Below are positions 11,252 through 63,900 of a stretch of DNA of 64,000 nucleotides, in pieces. A model generated the notes under the pieces. The model saw only the letters and a program-made list of their open reading frames with translations, had not been told where the DNA came from and made no database searches. Origin of the DNA: Haliotis rubra. Taxonomy: Eukaryota. The translations under genes were made by a program, and so were the position numbers. How positions within the stretch are numbered: the first letter of the stretch is position 1; each line of letters opens with the position of its first letter. The stretch lies in the NCBI RefSeq assembly GCF_003918875.1, contig NW_025765333.1, positions 62,001-126,000 of the forward strand, read 5' to 3'.

Positions 11252-11521
11252 GGAGACCCGTGAAAATCCGGGGTAGAATAGGTCTTCAGCAACCCATGCT
11301 TGCCACAAAAGGCGACTATGGTTGTCGTAAGAGGCGACTAACGGGATCGGGTGGTCAGGCTCGCTGACTTGGTTGTCTCATGTCATCGTATCCCATTTGT
11401 GCAGATCGATGCTTATGCTGTTGATCACTGGATTCTCTGGTCCAGGATCGATTATTTACAGACCACAGCCATATAGCTTGAATATTGCTGAGTGCGGCTT
11501 AAAACTAAACTCACTCACTCA
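11252..11521 (+). mobile_element. V-domain-type SINE, 5' truncated
   Basis: TGTCGTAAGAGGCGACTAA core and (ACTC)n tail. Other copies at 50605-50832 and 54470-54703. Confidence 0.75.
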
Positions 11522-17900: not shown

Positions 17901-19391
17901 ACGTCTCCATGTGACACTCAAACTGAGTTTCCTCGAGTTGGTGCCAAAGACGGATAAGTCTGTATTCCCCGAGTGGAATTTCGCTATATTTCATTGACTC
18001 ATAAAGCCTACAAGATGTTTCAAAATAAACATAAAAATACAGTTGAAATTCCTATATGCGTTTCTTTTTTGGGAGAGTATATTTCTTCCGTTATTGGTGT
18101 CCCTTTTCATGAAAGATTGTTCCTATTGTTTAGCCGTGACCATGACAACGAACACTGGCTTTTCGGTTTGTCTAATATTCTGGAAGTGTGACCACAGATT
18201 TGTATCTAATTTTGGAATTCCAAACTAAGTGACCTTGACAAACAAATAGTTAAAACATGATTTGTTCAAACTTCCGAATTTTGCTCGTATACGCTCATTA
18301 AATGCCTACATTGTTTAGGATGGCAAATGTTAAAATGTAGAGGAGTGAGTTCTGCTTCTGATTTTAAGCTTATTATTAGCCATAGAGTAGTAAATTCCTG
18401 GTGAATTGCCGGATCTGATGTTCGTGATTCTTTTTATGAACTATTCTTTTATTTTTATTCATAAGGGTTTTTGGTCTAACTAGGAGAACCAGATATAAAA
18501 CGTAGACAATGTTGTAACTGTTAACTATTTCTGGATATTCAGATAATGTGAAACGTGAAAGTTTACATAAAGTTTACGGAAACTAAAGAACCCCACAATT
18601 TTATAACCCTGCATTAATATTTAGGAATACCAGGAGCTTTAACGTTCAAACACGTCCTACTGCCCTATTTTCATTGTATACCATTATTAAGGTGGTATTA
18701 TGTGGGAACCAAGCTGTGTGATTATTGGTGGATTTCGAAATGACTATTCCATTCACAACGTGATATGAATTTCTGTAGTTATCATACTGAAAGGATGTTA
18801 TCACGCATTACAAGATTGTATAGTTGTCACACAAGATGGTTTACTTTTAGTTATCCATACAGTAGAGATGTAATTACACAACATGCTTTACCTTTAGTTA
18901 TCATACAGTACGGATGTTATTACACAAGATGCTTTACCTTTAGTTATCATACAGTACGGATGTTATTACACATGATGGTTTACCTTTAGTTATCATACAG
19001 TACGGATGTTATTACACAAGATGCTTTACATTGAGTTATCATACAGTAGGGATGTTATTACACAAGATACTTTACCTTTAGTTATCCATACAGTAGGGAT
19101 GTTATTACACAAGATGCTTTACCTGTAGTTATCATACAGTAGGGATGTTATCAGGCATTACAAGATTGTATAGCTGTCACACAAGATGGTTACTTGTAGT
19201 TATCAATCAGAAAAGATGTTATCAGGAATTACAAGAATGTATAGCTGTCACACAAGATCATGTAAGTGAGACTAACAAGAGTGTCGTAAACGTTGCAGTA
19301 CAAAGGTAGCGTATACTGAGGATTTTGAATACTTACCAACACAACGGCTAAAACAAATAAGTAAGAGGATGAGGAGTCTTTCCACTGGCAT
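14975..19391 (-). CDS. EGF-repeat (MEGF/SCARF-like) secreted or GPI-anchored protein, copy 2, intact, ~413 aa
   Basis: Exon 1 19391-19337 encodes MPVERLLILLLICFSRCV followed by G|GTAAGT. Exon 2 16161-14975 follows TTTCAG, is phase-1 compatible and open throughout. ~10 G-x-x-G-x-x-C EGF-like repeats and a hydrophobic tail YTYTLFSFLLVM. Confidence 0.85.
16567..18079 (+). mobile_element. Tc1-family (DD34E) transposon in the intron of copy 2
   Basis: Same left junction as 792-2298. FSDES, QQDNARPH and SPDLKPIE, with 34 residues between the second D and E. Small deletions cause frameshifts. Confidence 0.95.
18775..19260. repeat. ~46-bp intronic minisatellite
   Basis: Unit TAGTTATCATACAGTA(C/G)GGATGTTATTACACAAGATGCTTTACCTT repeated ~9 times. 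Confidence 0.85.
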
Positions 19392-19539
19392 CACTGACTG
19401 CTGTATACTGCTTGTCTTGAGTCATGAATGATGTGCGCCAACCTGGGAATAACATAATGCGCAGGGTCTTTCGGTTTTACCACGTTTCAACATACATGAC
19501 AGTGAGACATTCAAACCGCACAAGGACACAATGGGCACT

Positions 19540-19770
19540 GAGGCATGCAGTGCAGGTATTTATGTGAAGTATTGTGCACTGATGTAGAGACACTGCTAGA
19601 TTGTTTAGTTTAGGTTTTTTGTTAGATGTTTTGAAATTAGACTGTGACACAGGATGCAACGGTCATGGGGTATTTTGGAACATGACTCAGTGAGCGAGAA
19701 TCGCGTTCAGCAAAGCAGGTTGTCAACGTCACATGTTGTAAACAGTGACACAACAGGCCTAGTCTTATAG
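19540..19770 (-). promoter_or_regulatory. Putative promoter block of EGF copy 2 (homolog ~45830-46035)
   Basis: Non-coding block conserved upstream of both intact exon 1 copies. Contains a TATA-like CATAAATA/TATAAATA, and TGACTCA at ~19683 in copy 2. Confidence 0.4.
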
Positions 19771-26710: not shown

Positions 26711-27467
26711 TATTATTTATGGAAAACTCAGATTGGAACCCCTCTATATAAAACATGTGCAAACGTGTGATTCTATTATGGCATAAAATGGCAAATCATA
26801 ATGAAACAAATAACTCTTGTAAAAATAGAAAATACCATCAAACAACTGTGGAATCAGTGAAATATTTGTGTTCTTCATCAACCTAGCGTTAGCTTTAGCG
26901 AACAGTATGAAACATTTGTGACCAGTTCCTGCAGAACTGGCACAAGTTTAAGGGCAGCTTGAAGTGTGTGTACTATAAGATGGTTAAAGAAAACATAACA
27001 TTGAAAAAACCTTTATCTACCTAAAAACGTCAATCTCGATACAAGTTGAAAAAAATGTTTATCCAGTACGAGAGAAAAGATATGAAACACTTGTTTAAAT
27101 TCATAAAAACCATAAAACCACAGAAGTGTCGAAGCCGTTCAGAAGCCTGTATGAGATTCCTGTTACATTAATTCTGTCATATTTCATCGAACTCTCATCT
27201 TTATGTATGTATCTTGCCCAATACCCCTGTCATCTAGATTTAATTACTATATGTGAATTTATAATACAATTATAATTGAAAATCTACAAAGTGCTGAAAT
27301 CATTCGTCAAGAGATCACTGCAAAATCTATTTGCCTCGTCAAGGATCACAGAAGCAGCTTCAGGAAACTTTGCATACTTATAGAATAATCTCCTAATCAT
27401 AACACCTGGTGTGCTGAAGCTAAACACCTACATATGCAAAGAGAACTTGGCATCGTTTCAAGCCAAG

Positions 27468-28665
27468 TTACTATGCATTGATTAATAACACTCGATTTGA
27501 GTGCATAACAAGAAGGAAGGAACACAAAGTATATGTGTAGGTGTGTAAAGCTGCTTGAACCTGATGATATGTCGGTATGGCTATCTGTATGTGAGTCATC
27601 TGCTGGATCCGACACCCTCTTGGTCAAACTGTTAGACATACAGACGCCATCTTCATCACATGCATGGCAGCCACTGGGACATCGGAGTCTGCAATTCTCT
27701 CCCCTCCATCCGTCTTGACAATATCTGCATCTCCCATATCGGTCACATTCGTCATCTTTACAAGTGATACATTTCCGACAGTGAATTCTGTCCATGGTAA
27801 CCCCTTACACAGCCGTGGGTACAAGAACCATCTTGACTGGCACACAGTGATTCCGTGCACGTTGTACTGCACGGTGTCAGGCAGTATTTGCCATGCCAAC
27901 GGGGCTTACAGCCATCAACACAGGCACCATCATGGCTGTAACAACGAGAAGAGTTGCAGTTGGTGCTGCACCGGGTGGCACAACGATGACCGTGCCATCC
28001 TACTTCACAACCCTCCAGACAGTTACCGGTATAACGACCACAGTGCCTGTGCCCATCCCTGCCTCTGTAGCATGTTTAAGAACAGTTGTGGTTGCAGCGT
28101 CTTCTTCGGTAACCTGGACTACACTGTTCACAAATACCTGTTCCTCTGTCACAGCCAGTGGTCCAACATCGAGGGCACGTTTTGTCACACATGTTTCCAT
28201 AGAAACCCGGCTTGCAGCCATCAAGACAATATCCGGTCCAGCTGCATCTTCTGTTGAGGCAGGTATCACATGTTCTGTTGCAATACACTCCTGTCGAAGT
28301 TTCTTGACAGCCAAAGATACATCGACCTGTTTCTTTGTTACAGACTTGATCCTTGCAGTGTACACCAGTCAATCCTCCGTCACAGATTTCCGAACAAGCA
28401 CCTGTGTGGCGGTCACATATAGCAGAGATCACTATGATGATCGGGCATCTTCTCGGACAGAACACATTGCAGTCTCGTCCATAATATCCTGGCTTGCATG
28501 TGAAACATTCGCCAGTGATTCTGTTACACCCGTCTGTGTGACAGTTGTCATTACATGGGATGGTGCAGTTTGCTCCATAGCAACCAACGTAGCAAGACTG
28601 ACATCTTAGTCCACCGTTTCCATGTCGACATCCATCAGTGAAGCACGATGAGGAACTGGCCCCAA
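27468..28665 (-). pseudogene. EGF-repeat protein copy 3, pseudogene (exon 2 only)
   Basis: Acceptor at 28666-28668. Nonsense GAA>TAA at 28076-28078 and frameshifts near 27790 and 27548. No exon 1 seen upstream. Confidence 0.85.
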
Positions 28666-35850: not shown

Positions 35851-36311
35851 TGCTTCAATCAGTCACTTTTTAATGTACCTATCTTATGTACAAATTGTGT
35901 ACGGTTGAATGTGTGTCAGTGCACAGTAAGTACAGTGTACATTTATGTACAGTGTTATGAATAGTGTGTTGTATGGTTTGAATTATGTACAGAGTGTGCT
36001 GAAATGAGTGAAGTATGTTATGTTCAGGGTGGTGTTATGTTATAGATCCTTACCTGTAGAATCCTGAATGGACAGATGTCATGATTTCTTTCAGCAGTGT
36101 AGATTTCTGGATACAGAACTGGTATGACATTGTGTAGCATGTAGGCAAGCATGTATATATGTTTGTGTGTGTACTTGTGTGTGAAATCTATTTCATATTT
36201 AAGTGGAAACATCTTTTGACATGTATTATGTACCTCTTCAGGGATGCTAGCTTGTGGATGCATGTTTGGCTGCCTTCGGTTTTATGCGTGCGTACGTACA
36301 TATGGATGTAT

Positions 36312-36754
36312 NNNNNNNNNNNNNNNNNNNNNNNNNNNNNNNNNNNNNNNNNNNNNNNNNNNNNNNNNNNNNNNNNNNNNNNNNNNNNNNNNNNNNNNNN
36401 NNNNNNNNNNNNNNNNNNNNNNNNNNNNNNNNNNNNNNNNNNNNNNNNNNNNNNNNNNNNNNNNNNNNNNNNNNNNNNNNNNNNNNNNNNNNNNNNNNNN
36501 NNNNNNNNNNNNNNNNNNNNNNNNNNNNNNNNNNNNNNNNNNNNNNNNNNNNNNNNNNNNNNNNNNNNNNNNNNNNNNNNNNNNNNNNNNNNNNNNNNNN
36601 NNNNNNNNNNNNNNNNNNNNNNNNNNNNNNNNNNNNNNNNNNNNNNNNNNNNNNNNNNNNNNNNNNNNNNNNNNNNNNNNNNNNNNNNNNNNNNNNNNNN
36701 NNNNNNNNNNNNNNNNNNNNNNNNNNNNNNNNNNNNNNNNNNNNNNNNNNNNNN
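36312..36754. other. Assembly gap
   Basis: Run of N. Confidence 1.
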
Positions 36755-38935
36755 ATGTATGCATGGCTGGCTGCATGCATGCATGGCTGCATGTATGCAT
36801 GGCTGTATGCATGCATGCATGGCTGGCTTGCTGGATGCATGCACGCATGGGTGGCTGGATACATGCATGGCTGGCTGCATGTATGCTGGCTGGCTGCATG
36901 CATGCATGGATGGGTGCATGTATGCATGGCAGGCTGGATGCATGTATGGCTGCATTGATGGCTTGCTGCACTGATGGCTTGCTGCATGCATGGCTGGCTG
37001 CATGCATGGCTGAGTGCACGGCTGGCTGCATGCATGCATGCATGCATTGCTGGCTGCATGCATGCATGCATGGCTGAATGCAAGCATGGATGGCTGCATG
37101 CATGCATGGCTGGCTGCATGCATGGATGGCTGGCTGCATGCATGGCTAGCTGCAAGCATGGCTGGCTGCATGCATGGCTGGCTGCATGTCTGGATGTATG
37201 GCTGGCTGCATGGCTGGCTGCATGCATGCATGCATGGCTGGCTGGCTGCATGCATGGCGGGCTGCATGCATGGCTGGCTGAGTGCTTTGCTGGCTGGATG
37301 CATGCATGCATTGCTGGCTGGATGCATGGTTGGCTGCATTCATGGCTGGCTGGCTGCATGCATGAATGGCTGCATTCATGGCAGGCTGGCTGCATGCATG
37401 CATGGCTGGCTGCATGCACGTATGGTTGGCTACATGCATGCATCTATGGCTGGCTGGCTGCATGTATGGATGGCTGTCTGGCTGCATGTATGCATCGTTG
37501 GCTGCATGCATGCACGGCAGCGGATGCATGCATGCATCGCTGGCTGGCTGGATGCGTGCATGGCTGGATGCATGCATGGCTGGTTGGCTGCATGCATGCA
37601 TCGCTGGCTGGCTGCATGGCTGGTTGGCTGCATGCATAGCTGGCTGCATGCATGGCTAGCTGCGAGCATGGCTGGCTGGCTGCATGCATGGCTGGCTGGC
37701 TGCGTGCACGTATGCATGGCTGGCTGCATGCATGGCTGGCTACATGCATGTGTGTGGCTGGCTGCATGCATGCATGCATGGCTTGCTGGCTCTATGCATG
37801 CATGCATGGAGGGCTTGCTGGATTCATGCACTTATGGCTGGCTGGCTGCATGCATGGCTGGCTGCATACATGGCTAGGTGCAAGCGTGGCTGGCTGCATG
37901 GATGGCTGGCTGCATGACTGGCTGGCTGCATACATGCATGGCTGGCTGCATGCATGCATGCATTGCTGGCTGGATGCACGCATGGCTGGCTGGCTGGATG
38001 CATGCATGGCTGGCTGCATCCATGCATGTGCTGGCTGCATGCACAGTTGGCTGCATGCATGGCTGGCTGCATGCATGAATGCATGCATGCATGGCTGGCT
38101 GGATGCATGCATGAATGCTTGCATGGGTGGATGGATGCATGCATGGCTGGCTGGCTGGCTGCATGGCTGGCTGCATGCATGGCTGGCTGGCTGCATGGCT
38201 GGCTGGCAGCATGCATGCATGGCTGGCAGCATGCATGCATGGCTGGCTTGATGAATGCATGGCTGGCTGGCTGGCTGCATGCATGCATGGTTGGCTGCTT
38301 GCTTGCATGCATGCATCACTGGCTGGTTGGATGCGTGCATGGCTGGATGCATCCATGCATGTGCTGGCTGCATGCACAGTTGGCTGCATGCATGGCTGGC
38401 TGCATGCATGCATGAATGCATGCATGCATGGCTGGCTGGATGCATGGATGAATGCTTGCATGGCTGGATGGATGCATGCATGGCTGGCTGGCTGGCTGCA
38501 TGGCTGGCTGCGTGCATGGCTGGCTGGCTGCATGACTGGCTGGCAGCATGCATGCATGGCTGGCTTGATGAATGCATGGCTGGCTGGCTGGCTGCATGCA
38601 TGCATGGTTGGCTGCTTGCTTGCATGCATGCATCACTGGCTGGTTGGATGCGTGCATGGCTGGATGCATGCAAGCATGGCTGGCTGGCTGCATTCATGGT
38701 TGGCTGCATGGCTGGCTGCATGCATGGCTGGCTTGCTGGATGGCTGCATGCATGGCTGGCTTGCTGGCTGGCTGCAAGGCTTGCTGCATGCATGGCTGGC
38801 TTGCTGGCTGGCTGCATTCATGGCTGGCATGCTGGCTGGCTGCATGCATGGCTGCATTCATGGCTGGTTGCATGGCTGCATGTCTGGCTGCATGGCTTGT
38901 GTAGATACGGTTGCATGCATGGTTGCATGCATGGT
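36755..38935. repeat. Compound tetranucleotide satellite (GCAT/GGCT) with ~320-330-bp higher-order repeat
   Basis: Almost entirely GCAT and GGCT units. Variant landmarks recur at ~38021/38354 and ~38246/38563. Confidence 0.95.
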
Positions 38936-40518
38936 TTGTGTAGGCACGGTTGTATATATGTGTGTGGAGTGTTGTATGTGATTATGGAAGTGTATGATTG
39001 TAAATGTATGTATATGTAGATATTTATGATGATATGTTTGGTGGTGGTGTGTGTATATGTGTGTTAATGTGTATGTATGGATGTAGGTATGGTTATATGT
39101 ATGGCTGTATGTATGTATGTGTGGTTTTATTTATGATGTGTATAGTATTTATACGCGTGTGTGTTGTGTATGGCTGCATGTGTTTTCATATTTTATTACT
39201 GATATATTGTGTATATACCATTGTATGCTGATTTCATTACGGTAAAGAGCAAAATAAATATAATGCGTGTACATATGTTGCGCAATATCAAAGCGCTTAA
39301 ATTATTACCCCATCAAAGGATCAGCATGTACTATAACCCAAGCTGTATGTGAGGAGCTAGAAAGTTAACAGTCATCATCATACCCCACCGGTTACCCATT
39401 CACTGCTGGATGAACAGAGGATATTGTGCACATAGTCACTTGCCTTAGGTGTGACCACAAGTGTTACATGTGCTTCGTTGTGCGGCAGGACTGAAGTCCC
39501 ATAGAAACCCTCTGAAATCAAGCTGCCAAACACGGTAACCCATAGAATGACTCATCAACGTTGCTTAATGCAACAACACGGTGGGGGACAACAGAAAAGA
39601 GGTTCTCATATTGTACCCATGTCGGGAATCGAAAGCAGGTGTTTGTCGAGACGAACGAACGCTTTAACCACTGGGCTACTCCACCGCCCCTAACTATTCC
39701 CGATTATGGTGCAGAGTTTGTACAGTAAGGAAACAAAACCATGATAGCGTAGTTATATCGATGCATAACATTAAGACTTGAAGCATGTAATGCAGCAACA
39801 ATGTTTAGGCTATCACAAGCTAAAGACAAGACAGGATGTATATTAGAGTCTTTTATTCTCTTTGGTTTTCTATCTACACATTATCAAACTGTTTTAAAAT
39901 CTTTTATATTAACTTCTGATACTAATATTAATACTAATAATTACTACTAAATGATAGTTATAACTGACACGTGTCTAAATATTTCTCATAACGATAATGT
40001 ATGTGCTATACGCCCCTTTCAAATATTGTATGTAAACCCACTTGGGAATCGATCCCGGGCCTTCGGTGCGACGAACGAATCCTTTAACCACTAAGCTGCT
40101 ATCGCCCCCATAAGAAATGAACTTGCAGTGCGTTGAGACATTGTCATAACTAACGTATATAATGTCTATCTCGTTCAACGCGGACATGGGCTGAAGTGTG
40201 ACAATGCATCTTGCCATAACACGTTCAATGCCATATAAAATGCCATGTGTAATTTGGAGGTAATCCCCTACAACACATGTATGTTGTTACCGGTCATATA
40301 CAAACATAGTCACTACGTCAGTGACTGATTTAGTGTATGGATAGCCCAATTACGTAAAAAGTACGTTGATTGTAATATACATTGTGGATTGTATTACACC
40401 CAAGTTCGTTCGGATCAATGAAGGCGGTACGTTTTTGTGGTGTATTGATTTGTTAAAAATTTGTCACTAATGTGATTTGGGTGAAAGTCGTGTTCATTCG
40501 AGGAAGGGCCATAGTTTC

Positions 40519-43525: not shown

Positions 43526-45707
43526 TTAACATGCATCTATTAATAACACCCGATTTGAGTGCATAGCAAGAAGAAGGGAACACAAAATATATGTGTAGGT
43601 GTGTAAGCAGCTTGAACCTGATGATATGTCGGTATGGCGATCTGTATGGGAGTCATCTCCTGAATCCGTCACTCGCTTGGTCAAACTGTTAGTCACACAG
43701 AGACCATTATCATCACATGTGTGGCAGCCACTGGGACATCGGAGTTGGCAATTCTCTCCTCTCCATCCTTCTGAACAATATCTGCATCTCCCATACTCGT
43801 CACATTCATCATCTTTACAGTTAGTACATTTCCTGTGGCAATGCTTTCCATGGTAACCCGTTACACAGTCGTGGGTACACGAACCATCTTGACTGGCACA
43901 CAGTGATTCCTTGCACGTTTTACTGCATGGCGTCAGACAGTGTTTGCCATGCCAACCAGACTTACAGCCATCTAAACAGGCACCATCATGACTGTAACAA
44001 CGAGACGAGTTGCAGGAGGTGCTGCACCGAGTGGCACAACGATGACCGTGCCATCCTACTTCACAACCCTCCAGACAGTTACCGGTATAACGATCACAGT
44101 GCCTGTGCCCATCCCTGCCTCTGTAGCACGTTTCAGGACAGTTGTGGTTGCACTGTCTTCCACGATAACCTGGACTACACTGTTCACATGTACCAGTTCC
44201 TCTGTCACAGCCAGTGGTATAACATTGAGGGCACGTTTTGTCACACATGTCTCCATAGAAACCCGACTTGCAGCCATGGAGACAATATCCGGTTGAGCTG
44301 CATCTAATACTAAGGCACGTATCACACGTTCTGTTGCAGTACTCTCCTGTCCAAGTTTCCTGACAGCCAAAGATACATCGACCGGTTTCTTTGTTACAGA
44401 CTTGATCCTTGCAGTGTACACCAGCCAATCCTCCGTCACAGGTTTCCGAACAAGCACCAGTATGGCGGTCACAGATATTCGTGACCGTTGTGATGCTCGA
44501 ACATCTTCTCGGACAGGCGACATTACAGTCTCGTCCATAATATCCTGGCTTGCATGTAAAACATTCCCCAGTGATTCTGTTACACCCGCCTGTGTGACAG
44601 TCATTACATGGGATGGTGCAGTTTGCTCCATAGCAACCAACGTCGCATGACTGACATCGTAGTCTACCGTTTCCATGTCGACATCCATCAGATAAGCATG
44701 AGACTGATCTAGCCAAACCTGCAATACCAAAATGTGAAGAAAGATATATATTTGCACGTATATATCTGAAGTTATAATGTTTTGAACAAAGTGAAGCTTT
44801 TATCGTCTAGTTACATTGATAGTCATCGACTTTGATATGAACATAGCTTATTGCCGTCGTCTTTGGAAGTAAAGCTACGCCCGAGACTTTGTATTGAAGT
44901 GTGAGTTGGCTCCTGTTCTTCATGTGAAAAACCGATTTCCATTTTGTCCCAATGTACGAACATTTTCCTAACATTCGAAAATAGCTGGATCCAATGATGC
45001 TATGTTTACACCTCGGGCATAGCAAACGTTCAATTGCTTTCAACGGCATTGCTTCATTGTATACTGTTAAAAAAGCAGAGACTATTCCATCCATAGGTGT
45101 TATTATTTAGGAACCAAGCTGTATGATTGTATGTGATTTAGAAAATGAATTTAGTGCAAAAACGTGTTTCATGGTGTGCACGCTAACATGGTTGGCGTAA
45201 ATCTACAACTTACTTTGGAACATGTCATTTTGTTGCTGTACATGTCAGTCATAAAAATCAAATTGAAAGTTGTTCTGACATTGTTTAAGTTCAATTTAAC
45301 GTTGTTTGTGAGGCGGCGTCTGTCACGTAAGGAACTGCTAGGGCAGCTGATGTGGTCGGAAATTGGAACAAGCATTTGGCAAGAGCTCTTACCGTTTCAT
45401 AGTCAGTAGTTTTCAGCTTAAAATCACAAAATCGATCTGGTCCAATCTTGGAAATGTAGATTCTGTCTTGGTTAATGATCAAGTCTGACAAGATACTTGT
45501 GATCCATGCATACCTATAGTAGGTCCTATACTATTGTTTGAGAAGGTTCGTACATGAGCAAACAAGGCTGGTTCAAGTATATGATATTACTGATCCACGA
45601 ACTGTAAGTGACACTAACACGAGTGGAATAGAGGATTTTAAATACATACCAACACAACGGCTAAGGTAAAGAAGTAGGAGGATGAGGAGTCTTTCCACTG
45701 ACATCAT
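43526..45707 (-). CDS. EGF-repeat (MEGF/SCARF-like) secreted or GPI-anchored protein, copy 4, intact, ~416 aa
   Basis: Exon 1 45707-45650 encodes MMSVERLLILLLLYLSRCV followed by G|GTATGT. Exon 2 44718-43526 follows TTGCAG and contains the 396-aa Cys-rich ORF. Hydrophobic C-terminus YTYILCSLLLAM. Confidence 0.88.
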
Positions 45708-46205: not shown

Positions 46206-49200
46206 GATAATGCTTCTAATGTTGATTGGCTACCGATATATTGTACAGCCCTGCTATCAAGTTATCCGAGTATGGAAGACCCGTCTGTGTATGTGTCAAC
46301 AAGTCACTGAGTAAAGCTTGTAAGTTGATAAAAACAGACATTGATAATTTTGTGTGTCTCAGTTTCACAACAGATATTTTCCTCACTCAAATATAAATTT
46401 ACTATGTACAAACATACCACCAGCGGGTTCGTCAAAATGTAACCTTGATCAAGTTGATAACTTTTTATTATTGTAATCTGGCGCAATTAAGTGATTCGCA
46501 TACATTGTTATATGGTGACATGAACGCTCGAACAGGTGTGAGCAATAACCCACAGGTTCCTGTCAATGATGATAGAAATATCAGCATTGGTGTTTTTGAA
46601 GATGATGATGATATCACAGTTGATAATCTAAAGTCACATGATACTCTCATTAATAAGTTCGGACAAAACCTGATAGACCTTTGTTATGCGTTTCAGCTAT
46701 TCATCGTTAATGGCTGAGTGTTCGGAGACGAACGAGGTGAATTTACTTTCATGTGACAACAAGGCAATAGTGTTCTAAAAATGCCACTCAAACAAGTTAA
46801 GGCATGGTGTTAATGACTATTTCATCTCTTCTCCTGACGTTTTTCAATATATCAGCAAGCTGAATAGAGGTGATCAATTAGAATCTGATCATTTGGCACT
46901 GGAACTAACCTGTAAATTTCCTTCCTTGAAAACGTCGAATCTTAATACATCGTTGGAAGGTTTACTTCATAAAATCATATGGAATGATGCTCTTTGTGAC
47001 AATATTTTGGAAAATCTAAAAACGAATTATGCTCGTGGAATTCAGACATTTTTAGATAAACTTGATGACGCAATTGATGATTTTAAATGCATGATTGTAG
47101 AGTCTGCTAGTTGCATGAAGAAACGTATAATGAAACATAGAAAACATCGTAGTGATTTAAACAGGAGACTCTACTGTAAGGAAAGAAATAGATACAAAAC
47201 CCTTTGTAGAAGATACAAATCAGACTTGCGTAAACGAAATGTTAATTAGAAAGACTTTGCAAATGAAATGGTTCACCACCAGCGTTTTGGAAACAAATAC
47301 GAAAATTCAAGAATAGACCAATCATTGGCAATAGAATTACTAAAACAGCATGGCTTGCTCATTTTAATTTTTTTTTTTAGAAATGATTCTGTCTTTAATG
47401 ATTCTTGCACAAGCACTGATATGCAAGATGATGCAATAAGTGTGACATTTGAAAATGATTCAGACCAAGAAGCACTTGTATTAGATTCAATCATTACAGA
47501 TCAGGAAATTTGTGAAGCGTTGGTGCACTTAAAAAACGGAACATCAGCTGGTTTGGACCAAGTTGTTGTAGAAATGTTGAAGTGTTCACAATCTGTCATT
47601 ATGCCGTTTAATAAGTTGTTCGAGACTGGTATATTTCCACGCAGTTGGGCAATGTCACTTATCATCCCTATGCATAAAAAGGGGGATTGTACAAACCCTG
47701 ATAATTACAGAGGTATTTCCCTCATGAGTACTCTTGGCAAATTTTTTAATACGGTTCTAAATAATCGACTATCAAAATGGGCAAATATGAAAGGTGTTAT
47801 TCCTAAATCGCAAGCAGGTTTTAGGAAAAAATACTCAACGCCAGATCATATATTTACACTACTGGCCCTAGTAGAAAATTGTTTATCTCGCCGTAAGCGG
47901 AAGTTATATGTTGCCTTTGTCGATTTTCGCAAAGCTTTCGATTCTGTTGATCGTTCAAAACTTTGGTACTGTTTACGTAATTCTGGCCTTACAGGGAGAA
48001 TGTACTTAGTTCTGAAAGCAATGTATGATAATGTGAAAGCATGCGTACGCTGCGGTGATGATTTAACTGAATTATTTGACTGCCCGATCGGCCTGAGACA
48101 AGGTTGTGTTCTCAGCCCCATCCTCTTTTCCTATAGTATTTTATCAATGAATTATACTACGAAATTATGGCAAACGGATAACATGGCGTCCAAATGTTTC
48201 CAGATCTAATAGAAATCTTAATACTATTATTTGCCGATGATCTTATTCTTCTATCAGAATCAGTTCTTGTTGACACAATTAAATATTTTAGAACGTTACA
48301 CAAAGACATGGAACCTATCCGTGAACCTTGATAAAACACATATAGTCATTTTCAGAAAAGGTGTCCCACTTGCGGTAAGAGAAAGATGGAGTTTCGATAA
48401 TCAACTTGTAACTGTAAGAAATCAGTATACATATCTTGGTTTTATGTTTAATACAATCATTAATTTGAAGAAAAAAAACCGGTTGCTGAACTAGCCCTGA
48501 GAGCAAAGAAAGCATCAATTAGTTTATTGTCAATTATGCCTAATTAAGCGTGTTGACGCCAAAAATATTTATTAAGTTATTTGATTCACAAATACAGCCT
48601 ATCTTACTCTACTCTATATGGGGATTCCAGCGTTTTGAAAGTATCGAAAATATACATCTATTAGCGTGTAAAACGTTTCTTTGTGTTGGTCAGTCAACAC
48701 CAACATGTATGGTATATGGCGAATGTGGGAGATATCCTTTGTATATCAATTCCTATATCGATACATAAAATACTGGCTGAAAATTATATGTATGCATGAA
48801 AATAGACTACCTAAAAAGGCTTACAATATGCTTGTTCATCTGCATGAGTTGGGTAAAGTAACATGGGCATCTCATGTAAGAAATCTCCTATTTTCTCATG
48901 GTTATGGTTTTGTGTGGCTAAATCAGTCATCTGGCAATGTGAATGTTTTTTGTACTAATTCCGAGAAACAGCTATCAATATATTTAATCAAGATTGGCAT
49001 TCAGTTTTAGATAATAGCTCACGATATGATCCCTATAGCATGTTTAAAACCCTTAACCAACGCGAAAAGTACCTATCACACTTAACATCCAAAAAGTTGA
49101 GAAATTCATTAATACGATTAAGATTAGGACTATCAAACTTAATGATTAATGAAGGAAGGCGTGTATCCATCGACAGATATACAAGAATTTGCTCATTGTG

Positions 49201-50604: not shown

Positions 50605-50832
50605 GAGTGAGTGAGTGAGTTTAGTTTTACGCCACACTCAGCAATATTCCAGCTATATGGTGGCGGTCTGTACACAATCCAGTGATCAACAGCATGAGCA
50701 TCGATCTGCGCAATTGAGAACCGGTGACATGTGTCAACCAAGTCAGCGAGCCTGACCACCCGATCCCGTTAGTCGCCTTTTACGACAAGCGTGGGTTACT
50801 GAAGGTACATTCTAACCCGGACCTTCACGGGT
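50605..50832 (-). mobile_element. V-domain-type SINE
   Basis: Reverse complement of the 11252-11521 family. Confidence 0.75.
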
Positions 50833-54074: not shown

Positions 54075-56665
54075 ATGATACAGGTGCACGTATTTACAGT
54101 ACTGCTGTGCGTGAGCGCAGCTTTCGGCGCAGCCTTCAACCCTGACTACTTCCGGTGTCACCTTGACCTCTGTAAACGAGGAGAACAGTACTGTGTGGAG
54201 GAGAGACAACGATGTTACCACTGCGCAGACTTAACTCACCTGTGCAATACAACTGAACTCTCGCGAGACTGTGACAGCTATTGCTATCGTAAGTACACAC
54301 ATACAGTAACTCATAACGGATAAATTCCATTCGTAGAATGTAAGCAATTGTCCGTATGAATTACAAGAAACGATCGTTTGTTTGGCTGATATTAGAATGT
54401 GATTTAATCGACAAATCAGTTGTGGTCTTGAAAGGAAATATGTAGTTCTTAAAAGTTAAGATGGTTTCGCTTGTTGTTTAACGCCGCACTCAGCAATATT
54501 CCATCTATATGGTGGCGGTCTGTAAATAATCGAGTCTGGACCAGACAATCCAGTGATCAACAGCATGAGCATCGATCTACGCAATTTGAATACGATGACA
54601 CATGTCAACCAAGCCAGTTAGCCTGACTACACGATCCCGTTAGTCGCCTTTTACGACAAGCATGGGTTACTGAAGACCAATTCAAACCCGGATCTTCACG
54701 GGTTTATAACTTAAAAAAGCAGTGGTCAAGAGGCCTGTCCCTTGAACATAACTGTCAGCGCTGTACATGTGACTTCAAGTTTCATTAATTTCGGGGATAA
54801 ACGTCAACGACGTGTGTCACCTTCGTTTCTCCAATATATGGATATCAAATTAGGATTAATATAATTCGTAACCACACAGATACAATGTATATGACCATGT
54901 GCATCAATCCTGGGTTATTCACCATCTTTAAAATATAACGATAAAATCGTCTTTGTTATACAACAATGTGATCTCTTTTCAGGGGTTCAATTACAGAACG
55001 TAGTGGAACTTGAAGCAAATAAAAGCGCGGAGTTGGCAGACAGGCAGGCACACCTCCAACAGGAACAACAGAAAAACGCTGATCTGAAACAGACAGTCAA
55101 ACAGCTGGAGAGTAACGTCAGCCGACTCACAACAGTAAACGAGAATCTGAACGCTGAAATAACCAAAGGTGAAAACCTGAAAACAGAACATAAAGGTGAG
55201 ATAGCTGAGTGCTAAATATTGTAACTGTAGGTAATACAATCATTGTTCGTGTGTTCGTGTTATACATCTAGTCACAACAGTCATTGTGGTTCATCATTGT
55301 GTTTCAAAAAAGATAAAACGTGAATATCAAGTCTCGATTATTCAATGAAACAGGTGGCATCAGGTGTTATCTTTAATAACGTATAAACGAATCACATTAT
55401 GAAAACATTGTTGATGAGAGGTTCAAATCAGAATAACCACTCAGGTTGAAAAAGCTAATTTGAACACTTGGGATTCAAATTCAGTTTAATCAACTCTTAA
55501 TTCAGCATTGCAAATATAGTATAACACATAAAAGCACATATTTGTACGATTTCATTAAACATCTCTGATATCTGTTTGTTACAGAGCTGGTGAAACAATT
55601 GAACCAGAGCAAGATCAACTTCATCGTATGTCTAGTGAGTGGAGTGTTCATTGTCATCATTCTGTCAGGGACCATTTGTTGTCTCTATTGTCGGAAAGAA
55701 CGCCATTCAAACTCTATCGGCATAACGCAGTCAGGTAGGAAGAAGTACTCGCTGTATTGAAACCTTGTGAGACCATTTCGAAAGGTTCCATAAATATGAA
55801 ATTAGATTAAATTGTTTGAAGAATTTAATATAAAATATCACGGAAATAATATTTTAAATACCAATCTATTATTGCTCAGAAAATAAAGAGTGATTTCTTG
55901 TCTGATAATGTTACTGAAACATCTTTGCAAAAAATATGTGTAATCGCTTTTTGTTCAGTTACATTTTTGTTGAGATAAAATGTGGTCAATGAATTCGCAT
56001 TACTTTGAACATTACTGCAAACTAAATGCATATTTTTCAAAACGCTTAATGCTTTCGGAAGATATCAGTGGAATTGCCATTAAGGAGACAAAACAAGTTC
56101 TGGTCTGTTCGGAATCAGAATTTTGTGTCTAAACGTTGTATCCTCGTGTAGCTGTTGGTTTGGATAGGACTCATCACAAGTACTCAAAGACACAAAGGCG
56201 TGAATGCACATCGCAATATAGGTGCGGTAATCTGGACGCTGAATCTAATTTTCCCTCCCATACACTTGAGCTTTACATGTCCTTATATTTACAGGGGAGA
56301 TTAAAGGAGAGAACCGTTCCGATCTCGTCCCTTTGATGGACAAATGTGCACACCTTCCCACAGTTTCTCCTGGCCTTACCATCAATGGTGACGTCACTGT
56401 AGAAAGATTGGAGGTTCAGTCACCTGACAAAAACATCGACGATATCAACAGCACTCCTCCGCCAGCATACCAATCGCGTCTTGAAGCGAAGAAGGATAGC
56501 ATAGACATAACCGTGGCAGACAAAAACGACATTAACAAAAGAGAAAATGAGAGAACACCCTCAGTTCTGAAAAATATTCAACCCACTGACAGTTATTCAG
56601 GTAAGAAATACCCCGTTGAGCTGCTGAATCAAATTCAGAATGTCGACAACACCTATCCTCAGTAA
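54075..56665 (+). CDS. Grindelwald/TNFR-like single-CRD type-I membrane receptor A, ~315 aa
   Basis: Exons 54075-54288, 54983-55195, 55585-55734, 56295-56665: all GT-AG, all phase 1, total 948 nt. Signal peptide MIQVHVFTVLLCVSAAFG; 8-Cys domain; coiled coil; TM FIVCLVSGVFIVIILSGTICCLYC; tail with PPPAY. Confidence 0.85.
54470..54703 (-). mobile_element. V-domain-type SINE in intron of receptor A
   Basis: Same family as 11252-11521. Confidence 0.75.
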
Positions 56666-56901
56666 AGGACGTTTGTCTTCTGTATCAAAGGACAAGTGAT
56701 TGTTGGAACTGTGAATTTGTGAAAACTATCATTAGGGAGACAGTATATAAGATCATGCCTACTTTCATATAAACTGACAATGTTCGATGGTTATTCCAGC
56801 AAGAATATGAGTGAGTGGGGTTGAACAGTATGTCAACTATATCGTGGCAGAGTAATGTGTATTAAAAGCCAAAAGTTATGTTGTACTTGGACGTTTACAA
56901 C

Positions 56902-57022
56902 CAGGGGCTCCTTTCACGAAGCATCCTTTACAAAGGTTAACCTTAACTCCCATTCTTTAACATTGCACTAAGGTTACCTTAGCGACTACGATCACCTTAG
57001 TGCTTTGTGAAAGGGGGCCCTG
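56902..57022. mobile_element. Palindromic MITE (Harbinger-like)
   Basis: CAGGGGCTCCTTTCACGAAGCA...TGCTTTGTGAAAGGGGGCCCTG. Confidence 0.7.
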
Positions 57023-59697
57023 GGGCATGTGGCCGACCATTGTGACCCTTTGAGTGTGTAGTCATGAGGACCAACTTACAGTATTCAGTAAGTTTATGAT
57101 ATTTTACATTTTGGTCACAACAGGTGATCCAAATCGCAGGCATGACCAATTTGGTGGAACCAACTGCCACTGATGGCCTGGGTGATGCTAGGATTCGAAC
57201 ATACGGCATAAGTTTCAGGCTATAAGATTAAAGCATCTCTACACAGGATTTGCTGCATTGTAGATGACAACAACAACGGTACCTCGGAGTCGAAAACCTA
57301 GTTACATGTTGTACCTATGTTGGTAAGCGAGTCCTGACTTTTGTGTACAAACCGAATCATCCGTTGTTATACCATGACAGGTTTTTGTGAAGATTTCATG
57401 TACTTTTGTATACGTATTTAACTGAGAATGAATGCTTATATTTACAACATTATGTACAAACGTTACAATAATTTTAATTGTAAGTATGTTTTTGTAGCCA
57501 AGTGGTAATTTATGTTTGATCCCAAATGTTATTCAGTGATTAGATGTTGTCATACATATCATGATTGCTTTAATTGTATGAGTGAGTGAGTGCCGCAGTC
57601 AGCAATATTCCATCTACATGGCGGCGGTCTGTAAATAATCGATTCTGGACAAAACAATCAAGTGGTCAACAGCATGAGTGTAATTGTATGAATGTGATCT
57701 CATTGATGTAGAACTTTGCATTATAGCTTTTAACGCGAATGTGTGCATATACGTGCATATATTGCTGTAATACCACTGACCAGACACTTGAACGCTTGAC
57801 CAATCACAGACCTGCATTAGGTTGTGTTGCACAATGGCGCACGTTCATACAGTAATATGTCCATATCATTCCCTGAACTGTAGCTATTGTTGCTTTCTGT
57901 TTCACCCGGTTGCTTAACATAAATACCTAATGACCGTTGTCGACATGATTTTCTTAAAAACTCCCAGGCTCACTGATAGAGAGTATTCACATTGTTGTTC
58001 ACTCACTAAAAGGATAATCCCTGTCTCCTTCTACAAAAATAAAGGTAATCATAGAGCAGTATTTTCCAAAGCAAGTGGAAATAGGGATAGTCTGTAAAGA
58101 TAGTTGGAATATCCTTTTTGTTTCCAGAGATGCTTTTCACTCAAGATGTGTTTTCCATTTTGATATATTTAAGGTCTTCCAGCCGTGTGGTATCAAGCGA
58201 TGATTACTTCCTCGTGGCCATTATCTTATTCTGTTCAGTTTGTACATTCCGAGATCTGAACAACTCTATGTGTGTGCCCATGTCTATGTCAAGTTCATTA
58301 CATACTGAATGGTTGTGATAAGTCCATGTGTATTTTTATTGATTATGTTATTGTTAATTTCCCTCGGCTTTCAGTTACATTTTCGATGGTTACAAATAAC
58401 TTATTTTTGAATTTGATTAAATATGAAAAGATATAACTACACCCTTTCACTACCGTCTATTTATTTGTTACTTCTGTGAGTAATCCCGGTTGGGTTCAAG
58501 GATGTGAGTCAAGGAACATCAGGCATCTGTGAAGAAAAAAAAGGACGATGATTCTCACGGCAAGGCATTTGTCTGAACGATCTGAATCACAGCTGCTTTA
58601 TTGAATAGTAGTATAGAGGCACTAGTCCTCGTTTGAAAGTGTTTTCTCGAAAGCGGCATTGGAATACGGTTATTATGTCTTCGTTATATGTACAACATGA
58701 AGAATATAAAGAAAAATATGATTTTTAGTATCACACTAGTTCCGTTATAGGATAGGGCAAACCTGGATGTTTCTACACGGCCCCAGCTGGGACTCAAACA
58801 TAGATACTACAGGGTTTACGTGTAGCAATGACGTCGTGCATACAGTTAAACAGTTGAAAAAATAATATCAAAATACGTAAGTGAATGAGTGAGTGTTGTT
58901 TTACGCCGCGTTTAGCAATATAACAGCAATATTAGAAATGGGTTTCACACATTGTACCCACACGGGGAATCGAACCAAGTCTGCTAATCATCTCGTGTGG
59001 ACCCGATCATGCAGTGACTGACATAAGCATCCATCATCCACTTGGGTTATCATGACATCCATCAAAGAAAGTCACCCAGCCTGAACAACCAGCCCCATTA
59101 ACCACCTCTTAAGACCAGCAGGGAATACCGATTCCAACCTGGATATTCACGGGAACCATGAGTGCAAATGAAAACGAACAAAGAAAAAAACATAGTTATC
59201 CAGAAAACACCACTAAAGCCATCTTTTTTAACTAAAGCCCATCGTTCTGCATGAAGGAAACGCTTTGTGAACAGCAGATGCATTAATTCCATGTACAGTC
59301 TTACCTATACAATGAGTAAGTAGAGCGAACGAAGTTTTTACACGACAACATTTCAGTTATATGATGGCTTGTCAGCGAGGTTAATCTGAGAGGAAATCTG
59401 AGGAAGGCCATTGTTCACCAGGAGCACTACCTTGGTGTAGACAAACCCTGATTACAAGTGCTTTGTGAGATTCGAACATACGATCATCAGGAAAAAATAT
59501 GCATTGCAATTATGGGTGTTTAGTCTCTTTAGTTTTAGAAACTTTTACTGATGCCATCAGGGACATTACTTTGTAGTTGTTCATACGTAGGCCACAGGAG
59601 CTGACATACAACTTGCGAAGAGGTCTGGCCTTACACTCAAAGATATGGATGTTTGAAGACAGGAGGAACGTGTTGTGAAATGAGGTTTAACGTCAAA

Positions 59698-59856
59698 TGA
59701 GTGAGTGAGTTTTACGCTGTTATTAGCAATATTCCGCTAAGAGCACGACGGTGGATACCAAAAATGAACTTCACACATTGTACCCATGTGGGGAATCGAA
59801 CCCGTGTTGTCGGCGTGGCGAGCGAACACATTAAGCACTAGGCTACCCCCATCGTC
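59698..59856 (-). mobile_element. tRNA-derived SINE (diverged; partial copy ~58880-58980)
   Basis: Reverse-complement core CACACATTGTACCCATGTGGGGAATCGAACCC. Confidence 0.75.
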
Positions 59857-61084
59857 TCACGACACGTACAAGGCACTGTATTCAAGAAATGTCTCCAGAT
59901 AAATCAATGATTTTCCACGTCATGATTGATTATGAACACTGTGGATATGTTAAGAGAAGGGTAATACCCTCCTCACTCACTCTTTATATCGGCGTTGCAC
60001 ACTAACCCTTAAATACAAAAGCATAGTAAAACAGCTGAAATTGCCATTTCTATGCGAAACAGATCCCCATTTTATCACAATACTAGATTCCTATCTCTCT
60101 ATGGTTAGCTTTGGGAAAAGTAATTGTCCTTTTGCGTCAGGTGAAGTCTCGGCCGATGTCTTGTTGTTATGGATGGGTGTCTTCCACCACTAATGGCGTC
60201 TTAACGTCAACAACAACATCAACAACAAAATAGTTTTTACTTTCTTAAAAAAGCATTTAAAGGTGGATATGATGAACAAGGTTGATAATTGTATTCATAT
60301 GTTGCATTAGTTTTCAAATATAAAACAAGTGAGGACGATATTATCAAAGTAATGATGTTTAATACATATCTCTTCATTATAGAAATAGTATTACTTTGCA
60401 CATGACGTAAAGGCCAGGACTGACGCAAGCTATACAGTCGCTGTTTATATATATCAATAAATATTCATAGTGGAGGATTCGTCAAGGCTAAAAATAGTTT
60501 GGAAAACCACCGCCGTCATGAGATGAGTTGTGGTTAAATTTATCCCGGGACATCTTTACAGACAGTGTATTAGATAAATCGATTGTTTATAAGTTCTCGC
60601 TGTCAGACATGTATCATAGTATAACCCTTATACATTAATATAATACATGTGTTAAAGCTGAAGACAAAATACACCAGTTCCATCATAACTTTCAACCACT
60701 GAATCATTGATCGTATGCATGCTCATGAGCTGGCCGAGCTTCTAAATTTAGTCTGATGTCATACACGGTAACAGATGTAAACACAGGATAAAATATACAG
60801 TACGTCAGGTGCTTGGTCAGTTTGAAATCCTTGCTGGAGGTAGTCAGCTGACTTCTTGGTAGGTTATATCAACTGTATGCAATAAGTTTTGTGAGAACTG
60901 CTATGTGTGTTCATTGATAGATATGCAGGGGAGATTGTGTGGCAATTCCATCCTGGAAGAAGTGGTACCCTTTCGCACACGATTGTTTCTTAATATTTTT
61001 TGTGTGTAATGGTTGTACATTGAATATCTTCATTTTAAATGCAACCCTGTTTTACTTGAATACCGAGAGGAAAAGTGGGATCTA

Positions 61085-61330
61085 ATTCGGTGCGAACACT
61101 ATTCTAGCCATTTCATATGCTGAATGGGAAAACATGTCTGACCAACGAAGTGACGTTGTGTCGTTGTCGACAACGTTTGAACAACGTCGTCACAACGATG
61201 CACGTTTGCAGCATTCTTATAGAACAACGTTTTGTATACGTTATATGATCGTGACAACCCTTTAGTGACATTGTGACATGTTTTCGAGACGTGTATATGG
61301 AGTGTGATATTGTTGTGAAAACGTCAACTT
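61085..61330 (+). repeat. CAACGTTG-rich repeat, direct copy at ~62425-62660
   Basis: GCTGAAT.GGAAAACATG...GATCGTGACAACCCTTTA.TGACATTGTGACATGTT present twice. Confidence 0.75.
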
Positions 61331-61651
61331 TTGATCTTCATTTATAATGCATTTAAATAGAATCAGCTTAAGATGAAATCATTCCTGACAGAAGTGGAGT
61401 GGTAAATAATAGCTAATTCTAGAATCGTTAATCGAAATCGGGCATTTGGAGTTTGCATTTTAAATAATAATTTTTCTGAATGATATGACCATTTGCATTG
61501 CATGGGATAATTTGTTATTGTGATACTTCATGCACACTATTCCATCACAGCTGGAACTGCAATATATAGACGTTTTACACAGACTAGCCAACATTGTTAC
61601 CTGTCGATTTGAGGTATTCCATCACGATTATATTGATCTGTTGTAGAGACA

Positions 61652-63900
61652 ATGTTGACTAAGGACACTGTTCTTTGGGTCATCATTGCTCTACACGTGG
61701 GTGTTGCTGTCGACACCAACTACTTCAAGTGTTACCGGGACTTGTGTCGTCGTGGAGAACAGTACTGTGTGGAGGAGAGACAACGATGTTACCACTGCGC
61801 TGACGTAGCTCACCTGTGCAACACAACTGAACTCTCGCGAGAGTGCGACAGCTATTGCAAACGTAGGTAAAAACTGAGTTAGTTTAATTCTTTTTGTAGG
61901 TGTGATTTGAAAATTTCAGGTGCTTTCAAAATGTTTGGGATTAAATGATAAAATATGTTTATTTTCTGGGTACTGGACAAATATCAACTAAATAGGTGGT
62001 ATCTGAGCATTTGCAAAAATATAATAAATGCAAAACTCTAAATCATTTGACATATGTAAATAAATAATTCTTATAATTTTAAGGAAAATTCGTTTGTTTC
62101 AAAAGGGATTGCACTGGAAGAAATGACAAAGGAGAAAGACAAGGCGTTTTCAGAGGTGAAAACAAAACTTCACAGTGAGCAACAAACATCAGCAAAAATG
62201 AAGATGAAGATCACAAAGTTGAACACGAAGCTGGACCAACTGAATGAATCAAGGAGAGCTCCAGTGGTTTTTGACAGGGGAAATACAAAACGCAAAGCTG
62301 ATCATGAAGGTAAAGTACCTTTTTGCACGCGATTGTATGTTTTAATATTTTTGTATTTCAGTATTTGTTAGACATTGAATATCTTAATGTTAATTGTAAT
62401 TCTGCTTGACTTGAATAGCGATGGGAAAATTCGGTGTTAACACTGTTTCAGCTATTTTATATGCTGAATTGGAAAACATGCCAGACCAACGTTGTAGCAA
62501 CATTGTGTCGTTGTCCACAACGTCTGAACAACGACGTCATAATGATTCACGTTTGCAGCGTTCTTTTTAGGCAACGTTATATGATCGTGACAACCCTTTA
62601 CTGACATTGTGACATGTTTAGAGAAGTTTATATGGAATGAATTATAGTTTTGAGTACGTTATTCAAAAAACTTTCCATGTTTGCCTTGGCGTGACAACAT
62701 TTATGGGACACTATATCATCTAAAAACATTTAATGTTTCCAGCGTATATGTTTTGCTTGTTGTTATGATTGGAATGACATGAACAGAAGACAATGAAATG
62801 TTACAGATGTTGCCAAACAGAATGAGTGGTTGAAGGCCACCCTCACCGGCGTGGGTGCAGCTTGTGGTGTGTTGGGGGTAGTGGTGATTATCCTCACTGG
62901 CGTCATTTGCTGCAAATGTACCCAGAAACAAGATCCTCCTGATGAAGGGAAATCTCCGCTCCCACCTGGTAGGCAGAACAAGCATTGCTGGAATTACACT
63001 CACAGAATCGTCATCGGCAGCAAGATCGAAGATGCAATATATATATAACCATACCTTAGGCTTAGGTGATCAGAGAAATGGCTGAAGTTTCAAAGCTGTT
63101 TTTGTGGATCATTTGAACTAGCGTACGGTAAGAAGTGTCATACTCGGGCCTTCAATAACTTCAGGGCCTCAATATATTTAATGCAAGGTCTATATGAACC
63201 TTGTAGTTGTGTAATTTCATTCGTCACCATCTCGTGTTATTAATGGACAAGCTGAATACCGATTCATGCTTCTCTGGAAGGATTTCACATTGTCGAAATG
63301 ACATCAGTTGGTCAAGAATGAGCTGGTATTGCCTCAGTTTACCGCGATGTATTAGCGCTGGTTAGAAACTTCACGCGTCAAGACGAACGGAAGTATGGTA
63401 AATTAGTTAGAAATAAACATTGCATGTGTTCATCATTGTTAAAGACAATAAATTTTAATGTTTTCATTGACAATGTTCCTATTAGACATCAAACATAACA
63501 TGAATGCAGACTGGTCCTCAAAACAGAACTATAGGTTTGCATGTACGTATAGAAATAGGGTTCAAGAGTGAGACATATGTTTGAAAAGACATGTGCATAG
63601 GGACAAATATCAAAGTATATCAACTCTCATGTGTAATTCCGAATTTCTGTATTCACAGTTCCAGAGAAGGAGAAACTGGTGCCATACCAACTGCTGGATC
63701 AACTTTCTCCCCCGTTGCAAGTTTCAGGAGACTATGTCACCATAGGCACGAAGTCTCATGTTGTCAATTCTGACGGCGTCCACATCTTCAGTGCAGCAAG
63801 ACCGAAGATGCAGTCATCTTGCATCAGCAACATGAACAGCAACAACGGCAATGCACCGCCGGAATATAAGACATATTTGGACAGTGGACATGCTTGTTGA
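61652..63900 (+). CDS. Grindelwald/TNFR-like single-CRD type-I membrane receptor B, ~272 aa
   Basis: Exons 61652-61862, 62106-62309, 62807-62968, 63659-63900: all GT-AG, phase 1, total 819 nt. Signal peptide, the same 8-Cys domain, coiled coil, TM GVGAACGVLGVVVIILTGVICC, tail with PPEY. Confidence 0.8.

Follow-up and report, generated by a model that had tools for sequence, protein, structure and literature searches.

Two tandem abalone genes encode single-pass membrane proteins with a predicted head fold of the BCMA/TACI/Grindelwald type

Several receptors of the tumour necrosis factor receptor (TNFR) class carry just one cysteine-rich domain (CRD) as their extracellular head. The ectodomain of Drosophila Grindelwald (Grnd) consists of a beta-hairpin X2 module (residues 35-54) and a helical C2 module, C57-x3-C61-x11-C73-x3-C77 (PMC8024323). 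Its eight cysteines form four disulfides, Phe46 belongs to the core and Asn63 is glycosylated (PMC8024323). The CRD is followed directly by the transmembrane (TM) domain, and the helices are part of the CRD itself (PMC8024323). Human BCMA (TNFRSF17) and TACI (TNFRSF13B) are membrane proteins of type I that have one small head and lack a death domain. Mollusc and annelid “grnd homologs” have been proposed (bioRxiv 10.1101/2024.07.27.603686), and in a 2026 preprint CxxCxxxC is the signature of Grnd-like CRDs. Here we describe two neighbouring genes, A and B, of the abalone Haliotis rubra, located in a stretch of 64,000 nucleotides (RefSeq assembly GCF_003918875.1, contig NW_025765333.1, positions 62,001 to 126,000 of the forward strand), hereafter the window, whose own numbering is used throughout. 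We consider it reasonably probable that A and B are distinct, intact genes whose products cross the membrane once, in type I orientation, and bear a single-CRD TNFR-type head.

A first-pass annotation of the window, made from its letters, had proposed two tandem paralogs in a probable mollusc, each splicing into four phase-1 exons with one module per exon. This description was borne out in full. The product of gene A exon 1 is identical (100%) to residues 1-72 of the H. rubra protein XP_046559583, all introns of both genes, as read from the flanks of the open reading frames, are GT-AG and in phase 1, and the junctions predicted for A and for B are each those used in XP_046559583. Gene A (54075-56665, 315 residues) and gene B (61652-63900, 272 residues) both lie on the + strand and comprise four exons each:

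54075..54288, + strand: gene A exon 1; opens at the start codon, with a signal peptide (residues ~1-19) ahead of the eight-cysteine domain (C28-C70, nucleotides 54156-54284)
54983..55195, + strand: gene A exon 2; extracellular stalk, helical and heptad-periodic, with the N-glycosylation sequons NKS and NVS
55585..55734, + strand: gene A exon 3; remainder of the stalk, then the TM helix (residues 155-173, nucleotides 55620-55676), juxtamembrane CCLYC and start of the tail
56295..56665, + strand: gene A exon 4; the cytoplasmic tail up to its stop codon, with PPAY at 56459-56470 and the conserved blocks TINGDVTV and ERTPSVLKNIQPTD
61652..61862, + strand: gene B exon 1; opens at the start codon, with a signal peptide ahead of the eight-cysteine domain (C27-C69, nucleotides 61730-61858)
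62106..62309, + strand: gene B exon 2; helical stalk, its heptads weaker than in A and broken at RRAPVVFDRGN
62807..62968, + strand: gene B exon 3; TM helix (nucleotides ~62845-62913), juxtamembrane CCKC and start of the tail
63659..63900, + strand: gene B exon 4; tail and stop, with PEKEKL, the GDYVTIGTKSHV block, PPEY at 63856-63867 and the C-terminus YLDSGHAC

In gene A, the phase-1 boundary of exon 1 comes one and a third codons past the last cysteine. The acceptor of exon 4 was placed at 56295 (tccttatatttacag/GG, the exon starting at GG), the site also used in the orthologues P0002 and P0014 and in RefSeq. It has the better polypyrimidine tract and restores the block GEIKGENRSDLVPLMDKCAHLPT, which can be aligned with these two orthologues. 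A weaker in-frame AG at 56364, which would give a 292-residue protein A, was considered and dropped after comparison with the orthologues and RefSeq. The reading frame of gene B exon 2 was corroborated by the orthologue P0003.

Each exon therefore carries one module: a signal peptide with the cysteine domain (exon 1), the stalk (exon 2), the TM helix with CCLYC or CCKC (exon 3) and the tail (exon 4). The core of the head spans 43 residues and follows the spacing C-x4-C-x6-C-x6-C-x2-C-x6-C-x8-C-x3-C, given in the first-pass annotation and exact in both A and B. The eight cysteines, one aspartate and one tyrosine (Y39 in A) are invariant in the family alignments; in the widest alignment, the gene-called fragment P0005 is without the second cysteine. 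The stalk, encoded by exon 2 together with the first part of exon 3, is about 85 residues long, contains N-x-S/T sequons and is almost devoid of proline and glycine in A. Hydrophobic residues occupy 52% of the a and d positions of the A stalk, compared with 20% elsewhere, a value reached by 48 of 2000 shuffles. The heptad periodicity of the proposed coiled coil is significant for A, and also for the paralogues P0007 (0/2000 shuffles) and P0009 (4/2000). A Pfam scan of exon 2 gave only weak, sub-threshold coiled-coil matches. The paralogue groups P0006 and P0013 have short stalks devoid of heptads, so the coiled coil is a feature of a subfamily. The TM helix of gene A has a mean Kyte-Doolittle hydropathy of 2.73 over 19 residues.

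The tails of A and B are unrelated to each other except for a conserved PPxY motif, found as PPAY or PPVY among A orthologues and as PPEY or PPAY among B orthologues. Judged from sequence, this motif is a candidate docking site for WW domains. In keeping with the earlier claim of a tail without a death domain, Pfam found no domain in either tail, and a search of the Protein Data Bank (PDB) with the tails gave no matches. A RHIM-like reading of the B tail was also considered and rejected; the tail offers only “VTIG” and “LTING”, with no [IV]Q[IVL]G core.

The fold of the head was predicted with AlphaFold2. The head with 17 residues of stalk, modelled without templates, gave a mean predicted local distance difference test score (pLDDT) of 91.9 and a predicted template-modelling score (pTM) of 0.72. 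The model contains strands at residues 6-9, 12-15, 19-22 and 27-30 and helices at 31-37 and 45-68. These form two beta-hairpins followed by a short helix and, after a loop, by a long helix, which bears the last two cysteines and runs on as the stalk. When the head was modelled alone (50 residues), the pLDDT fell to 73 with a poor C-terminus, and the top Foldseek matches were still BCMA and Grnd. The two modules of a TNFR CRD, an A1/X2-type hairpin and a B/C/D-type module, can both be recognised in the predicted model as hairpins and a helix-loop-helix; the PDB matches of this model have low absolute scores.

A Foldseek search with the model against 350,542 PDB chains placed Grnd at ranks 1 and 2 (6zsy and 6zt0) and BCMA and TACI at ranks 3 to 12. 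The BCMA matches had target-normalised TM-scores of 0.62-0.73 and root-mean-square deviations (rmsd) of 1.7-2.5 Å. A VIA-align scan of 48,161 representative chains, independent of Foldseek, ranked BCMA first and second (Z 3.5 and 3.3), TACI third (Z 3.0, 2.3 Å, 37/38 residues) and Grnd fifth (Z 2.7, 43/48 residues, 23% identity); the remaining rows were helix-only matches to the stalk. In a second look with VIA, BCMA reached Z 4.5 at 1.7 Å over 39/39 residues (1.4 Å over 35/35 for 8qy9_A), and Grnd Z 3.8 at 2.8 Å over 46/51 residues. Since one receptor class is enriched at the top of two independent rankings, for a domain of only 40-50 residues, the modelled head likely adopts the TNFR single-CRD fold.

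A number of observations nevertheless weigh against a TNFR-type reading of these proteins. The fold prediction took as input an alignment of 15 sequences. The Foldseek E-values (1.9-6) are weak in absolute terms, and all VIA Z scores are at or below 4.5, whereas according to the notes of the tool a Z below 8 may mean only a common arrangement. At E<=10, Pfam gave no match for the exons of the window or for 15 family heads, including to TNFR_c6, BCMA-Tall_bind, TACI-CRD2 and BaffR-Tall_bind, although according to the literature Grnd itself also misses TNFR_c6. Neither phmmer nor a family profile, run against all PDB sequences including Grnd (6ZSY/6ZT0), BCMA and TACI, retrieved a TNFR or Grnd at E<=10. 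The abalone heads carry CxxC-x6-C, invariant in the family, and so depart from the CxxCxxxC signature of Grnd-like CRDs. The tails contain no death domain, and no conserved TRAF2 or TRAF6 motif was found in them among orthologues ([PSAT]x[QE]E, PxQxxD, PxExx[Ar/Ac]). Finally, the heptads of the gene B stalk, which the first-pass annotation had taken for a coiled coil as in A, are weak and not significant (279/2000 shuffles), with a break formed by proline and glycine. Homology of the head to TNFR families is unproven.

In another explanation, A and B would be orphan membrane proteins restricted to the genus. Their cysteine domain would then have converged on a hairpin-plus-helix knot, serving adhesion or the binding of a non-TNF ligand, for example a microbial or matrix one. 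Besides the lack of detectable sequence or profile similarity in the Pfam and PDB searches, the weak structural scores and the tails devoid of TRAF and death-domain features, two further observations favour it: the family was found only in Haliotis and one contig of the European Nucleotide Archive (ENA) among 1.84 billion representative proteins, and a search of a library of papers found no description of an extracellular coiled-coil stalk as a TNFR feature. Convergence accounts less well for the structural rankings, in which single-CRD TNFRs, and essentially nothing else rich in cysteine, came out highest with two independent aligners, among more than 48,000 chains in one case and over 350,000 in the other. 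The whole BCMA chain is covered at 1.4-1.8 Å, and the count of eight cysteines and the spacings at both ends match those of Grnd. We regard the orphan explanation as unlikely, but as deserving real weight, and retain the TNFR-type head as the preferred reading.

How the TNFR-type head compares with each known receptor depends on the feature considered. BCMA and TACI CRD2 are the best structural matches, and BCMA superposes more closely (1.4-1.8 Å over its whole chain) than Grnd (2.8 Å). The match to BCMA and TACI begins at the second strand of the abalone head, which thus has an additional N-terminal strand and cysteine pair, giving eight cysteines, as well as three additional residues between the fifth and sixth cysteines. 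Where BCMA and TACI have a short linker, the abalone proteins have their roughly 85-residue helical stalk; searches of the abalone tails gave no TRAF-binding motif, and similarity to BCMA or TACI is undetectable by sequence or profile.

Grnd (PDB 6ZSY and 6ZT0) is the top Foldseek match, with 22-27% identity in structural alignments. It shares with A and B a single CRD with eight cysteines, for which hairpins and a helix-loop-helix are predicted in abalone, the absence of a death domain, the C-x2-C ... C-x3-C ends and an equal overall span. An N-glycosylation sequon stands beside the sixth cysteine in both. If the cysteines are aligned without gaps, using the residue numbers given in PMC8024323, the invariant Tyr39 would fall on Phe46 and the sequon near Asn63; the ranges reported by VIA suggest gaps near the C-terminus in the structural alignment to Grnd. 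There are also differences. The C2 module of Grnd reads C-x3-C-x11-C-x3-C, against C-x6-C-x8-C-x3-C in abalone, where the sixth cysteine comes three residues later. One hairpin is described in Grnd and two are present in the abalone model. Grnd passes through a short linker into the TM domain, without a coiled coil, and its superposition is poorer than that of BCMA. The abalone tails gave no canonical TRAF motif, and nothing in them could be recognised as matching the Traf2-binding or Veli-binding region of Grnd, the Veli-binding determinant being loosely defined.

The first-pass annotation had called A and B Grnd-like, describing Grnd as an atypical TNFR with eight cysteines of similar spacing followed by a helical stalk. 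The cysteine count and spacing were broadly right, but PMC8024323 describes no helical stalk after the CRD. Comparison of the model with the Grnd ectodomain and with the BCMA and TACI CRDs, which the same annotation had suggested, returned these structures as the best PDB matches, albeit with low absolute scores. The predicted model thus supports a Grnd-like TNFR at the level of fold, where BCMA fits better than Grnd; sequence and profile searches detected no such likeness, and the heads depart from the CxxCxxxC signature. The proposed mollusc and annelid “grnd homologs”, compared here by description only, resemble A and B in being small receptors with one CRD of the BCMA/TACI/Grnd type, tandemly expanded in a lophotrochozoan and carried as uncharacterized in annotation. 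The A/B pair and its close paralogues differ by their long coiled-coil stalk and by heads that are nearly identical while the tails diverge.

The first-pass annotation had also supposed that the pair was hidden from annotation. This was not so: the locus is RefSeq LOC124268654, an “uncharacterized” gene in which A and B are fused, and three other Haliotis species have annotated orthologues. The 568-residue product XP_046559583 consists of A 1-294, “ET” and B 1-272, with 100% identity. In this model and in XP_046559584, a GTAAGA donor within A exon 4 ends the exon at 56600, and an AG located 5 nucleotides before the ATG of gene B starts the next at 61647, in frame. The join removes the following segment:

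56601..61646, + strand: “intron” of the RefSeq fusion model; contains the last 21 codons and the stop of A, AATAAA at 56861 and the DNA lying between A and B

If RefSeq were right, the locus would be a single gene encoding a protein with two heads and three membrane-spanning segments. The in-frame join in both XP_046559583 and XP_046559584 argues for such a protein. However, A-type and B-type proteins are annotated as separate gene models in H. asinina, H. cracherodii and H. rufescens, with the same four-exon layout in the H. rufescens genes. The 21 C-terminal residues of A past the internal donor resemble the C-termini of its orthologues P0002 and P0014. In addition, AATAAA follows about 200 nucleotides past the stop of A, and gene B begins with its own methionine and signal peptide. 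On these grounds a single two-headed protein seems very improbable; LOC124268654 is probably two separate intact genes, and the fusion an artefact of model merging or a minor read-through.

The two intact genes belong to a family. An exhaustive phmmer search with the A head (exon 1) against the representative proteins mentioned above returned 10 matches. Nine of them were true, and the named ones were all Haliotis “uncharacterized protein”; the tenth, P0008, was a leucine-rich-repeat false positive and was discarded. Two profile searches, with full-length and head-only profiles, found outside Haliotis only P0005 and P0012, both from the ENA assembly ERZ25071447. With all searches combined, the family was found in four Haliotis species and this one assembly. 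Of the expanded lophotrochozoan family that had been proposed, the expansion is seen within Haliotis, but beyond the genus these searches found only the single ENA contig. A third member of the family in H. rubra, LOC124268655 (P0010/P0013), lies on the same 197-kb contig beyond the window.

The head exon of the ENA contig (ctg85278; L001:10145-10282) belongs to the family (40-49% identity) and is followed by the same phase-1 intron past the last cysteine. No nucleotide similarity to Haliotis and no common repeats were found in this contig. On the 3' side of the head exon, it has one possible TM open reading frame (19364-19558) and no convincing stalk exon.

In a tree of full-length proteins, the A and B sequences form two clades, each with several species; the A/B duplication therefore predates the splits of those species. 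More distant paralogue groups are formed by P0004, P0007, P0009, P0006 and P0013/18/19. The heads of A and B share 78% amino acid and 86% nucleotide identity over the cysteine domain only. At the DNA level, similarity between the two genes is confined to 151 nucleotides (54145-54295 against 61719-61869) with 87% identity and an identical run of 47 nucleotides, and none is detectable elsewhere in the genes. Identity at third codon positions is 0.80 between A and B of H. rubra and thus as high as between the B orthologues of this species and H. rufescens (0.78), which suggests, from sequence comparison, gene conversion limited to this exon or an unusual constraint confined to the head. Residues specific to A or to B at the edges of the head are kept across species.

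The cluster has also lost members. Between the B-type and A-like genes of H. rufescens, a partial, stop-interrupted cysteine-domain exon (L002:7986-8099; identity of about 50% across 27-38 residues) represents the remains of a further paralogue of the cluster. Such birth and death of copies, together with the degeneration of the gene B stalk as a coiled coil, could be taken to mean that one or both copies are non-functional in H. rubra as well. This is scarcely credible, as both reading frames are intact over four exons with consensus splice sites, and the eight cysteines and the tail motifs are kept among the orthologues of four species.

Taken as two functional receptors, A and B could operate as follows. 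The mature N-terminus would form one disulfide-rich domain with the predicted BCMA/TACI/Grnd-type fold, although the pairing of the disulfides is itself a conjecture. The last helix of the head would run into the N-glycosylated helical stalk of about 85 residues with its heptads, so that the heads may be held off the membrane and would probably be pre-oligomerised. The CCLYC and CCKC motifs after the TM helix are likely to be palmitoylated. A and B would most likely act as receptors, co-receptors or decoys for TNF-family ligands of abalone. Because their heads are nearly identical, the two may see the same or a very similar ligand, and because their tails differ, they may couple to different cytoplasmic partners.

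A bolder version of this scheme can be envisaged, which we put forward as speculation and consider rather improbable as a whole. In it, a TNFR-type head would be rigidly joined by a continuous helix to a pre-formed, possibly trimeric coiled coil, yielding a constitutively pre-assembled receptor that mirrors a stalked trimeric ligand. A and B would then be paired receptors, with heads near-identical even at synonymous sites, that convert one ligand into two outputs, for example through PPxY/WW-domain partners and not through TRAFs.

Other features of the window were also recorded. A short interspersed repeat of about 230-250 bp occurs in intron 1 of gene A (54471-54703), between A and B (57559-57711) and at 11255-11505 and 50624-50832; it is also present in H. 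rufescens (L002) with 73-87% identity. The remaining features are the following:

14975-15868, 27397-28465 and 43526-44716 (- strand): three paralogous exons or genes in tandem, with abundant EGF-like repeats, a sub-threshold Pfam EGF_TEN match and MEGF/teneurin-like cysteine repeats; a hydrophobic tail and a Ser/Asp-rich segment, similar in all three, form the end of each
1119-2104, 17361-17885, 3954-7085 (- strand) and 47268-48209: transposon remains, comprising pieces of Tc1/mariner-type transposase (helix-turn-helix, DDE_3), long-terminal-repeat retrotransposon pol (protease, reverse transcriptase, RNase H, integrase) and non-LTR reverse transcriptase
~36150-39020: long low-complexity stretch open in all frames (MHAC/WLAG-type repeats), with strong GC and AT skew and a run of N inside

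The most immediate consequence of this analysis concerns annotation, in that the RefSeq model LOC124268654 should be corrected to two genes. As a system the pair is not of a new kind; Grnd-like receptors of molluscs have already been claimed in a 2026 preprint. What is unusual in A and B is that the coiled-coil stalk continues from the head and that a common head is combined with different tails. If they are true receptors of TNF ligands, the single-CRD branch represented by BCMA, TACI and Grnd would gain a form with an extracellular coiled-coil stalk and a tail free of TRAF and death-domain features. This would bear on the diversification of TNF signalling in invertebrates, alongside the large expansions of TNF ligands in molluscs, and would provide concrete candidate receptors for abalone immunology.

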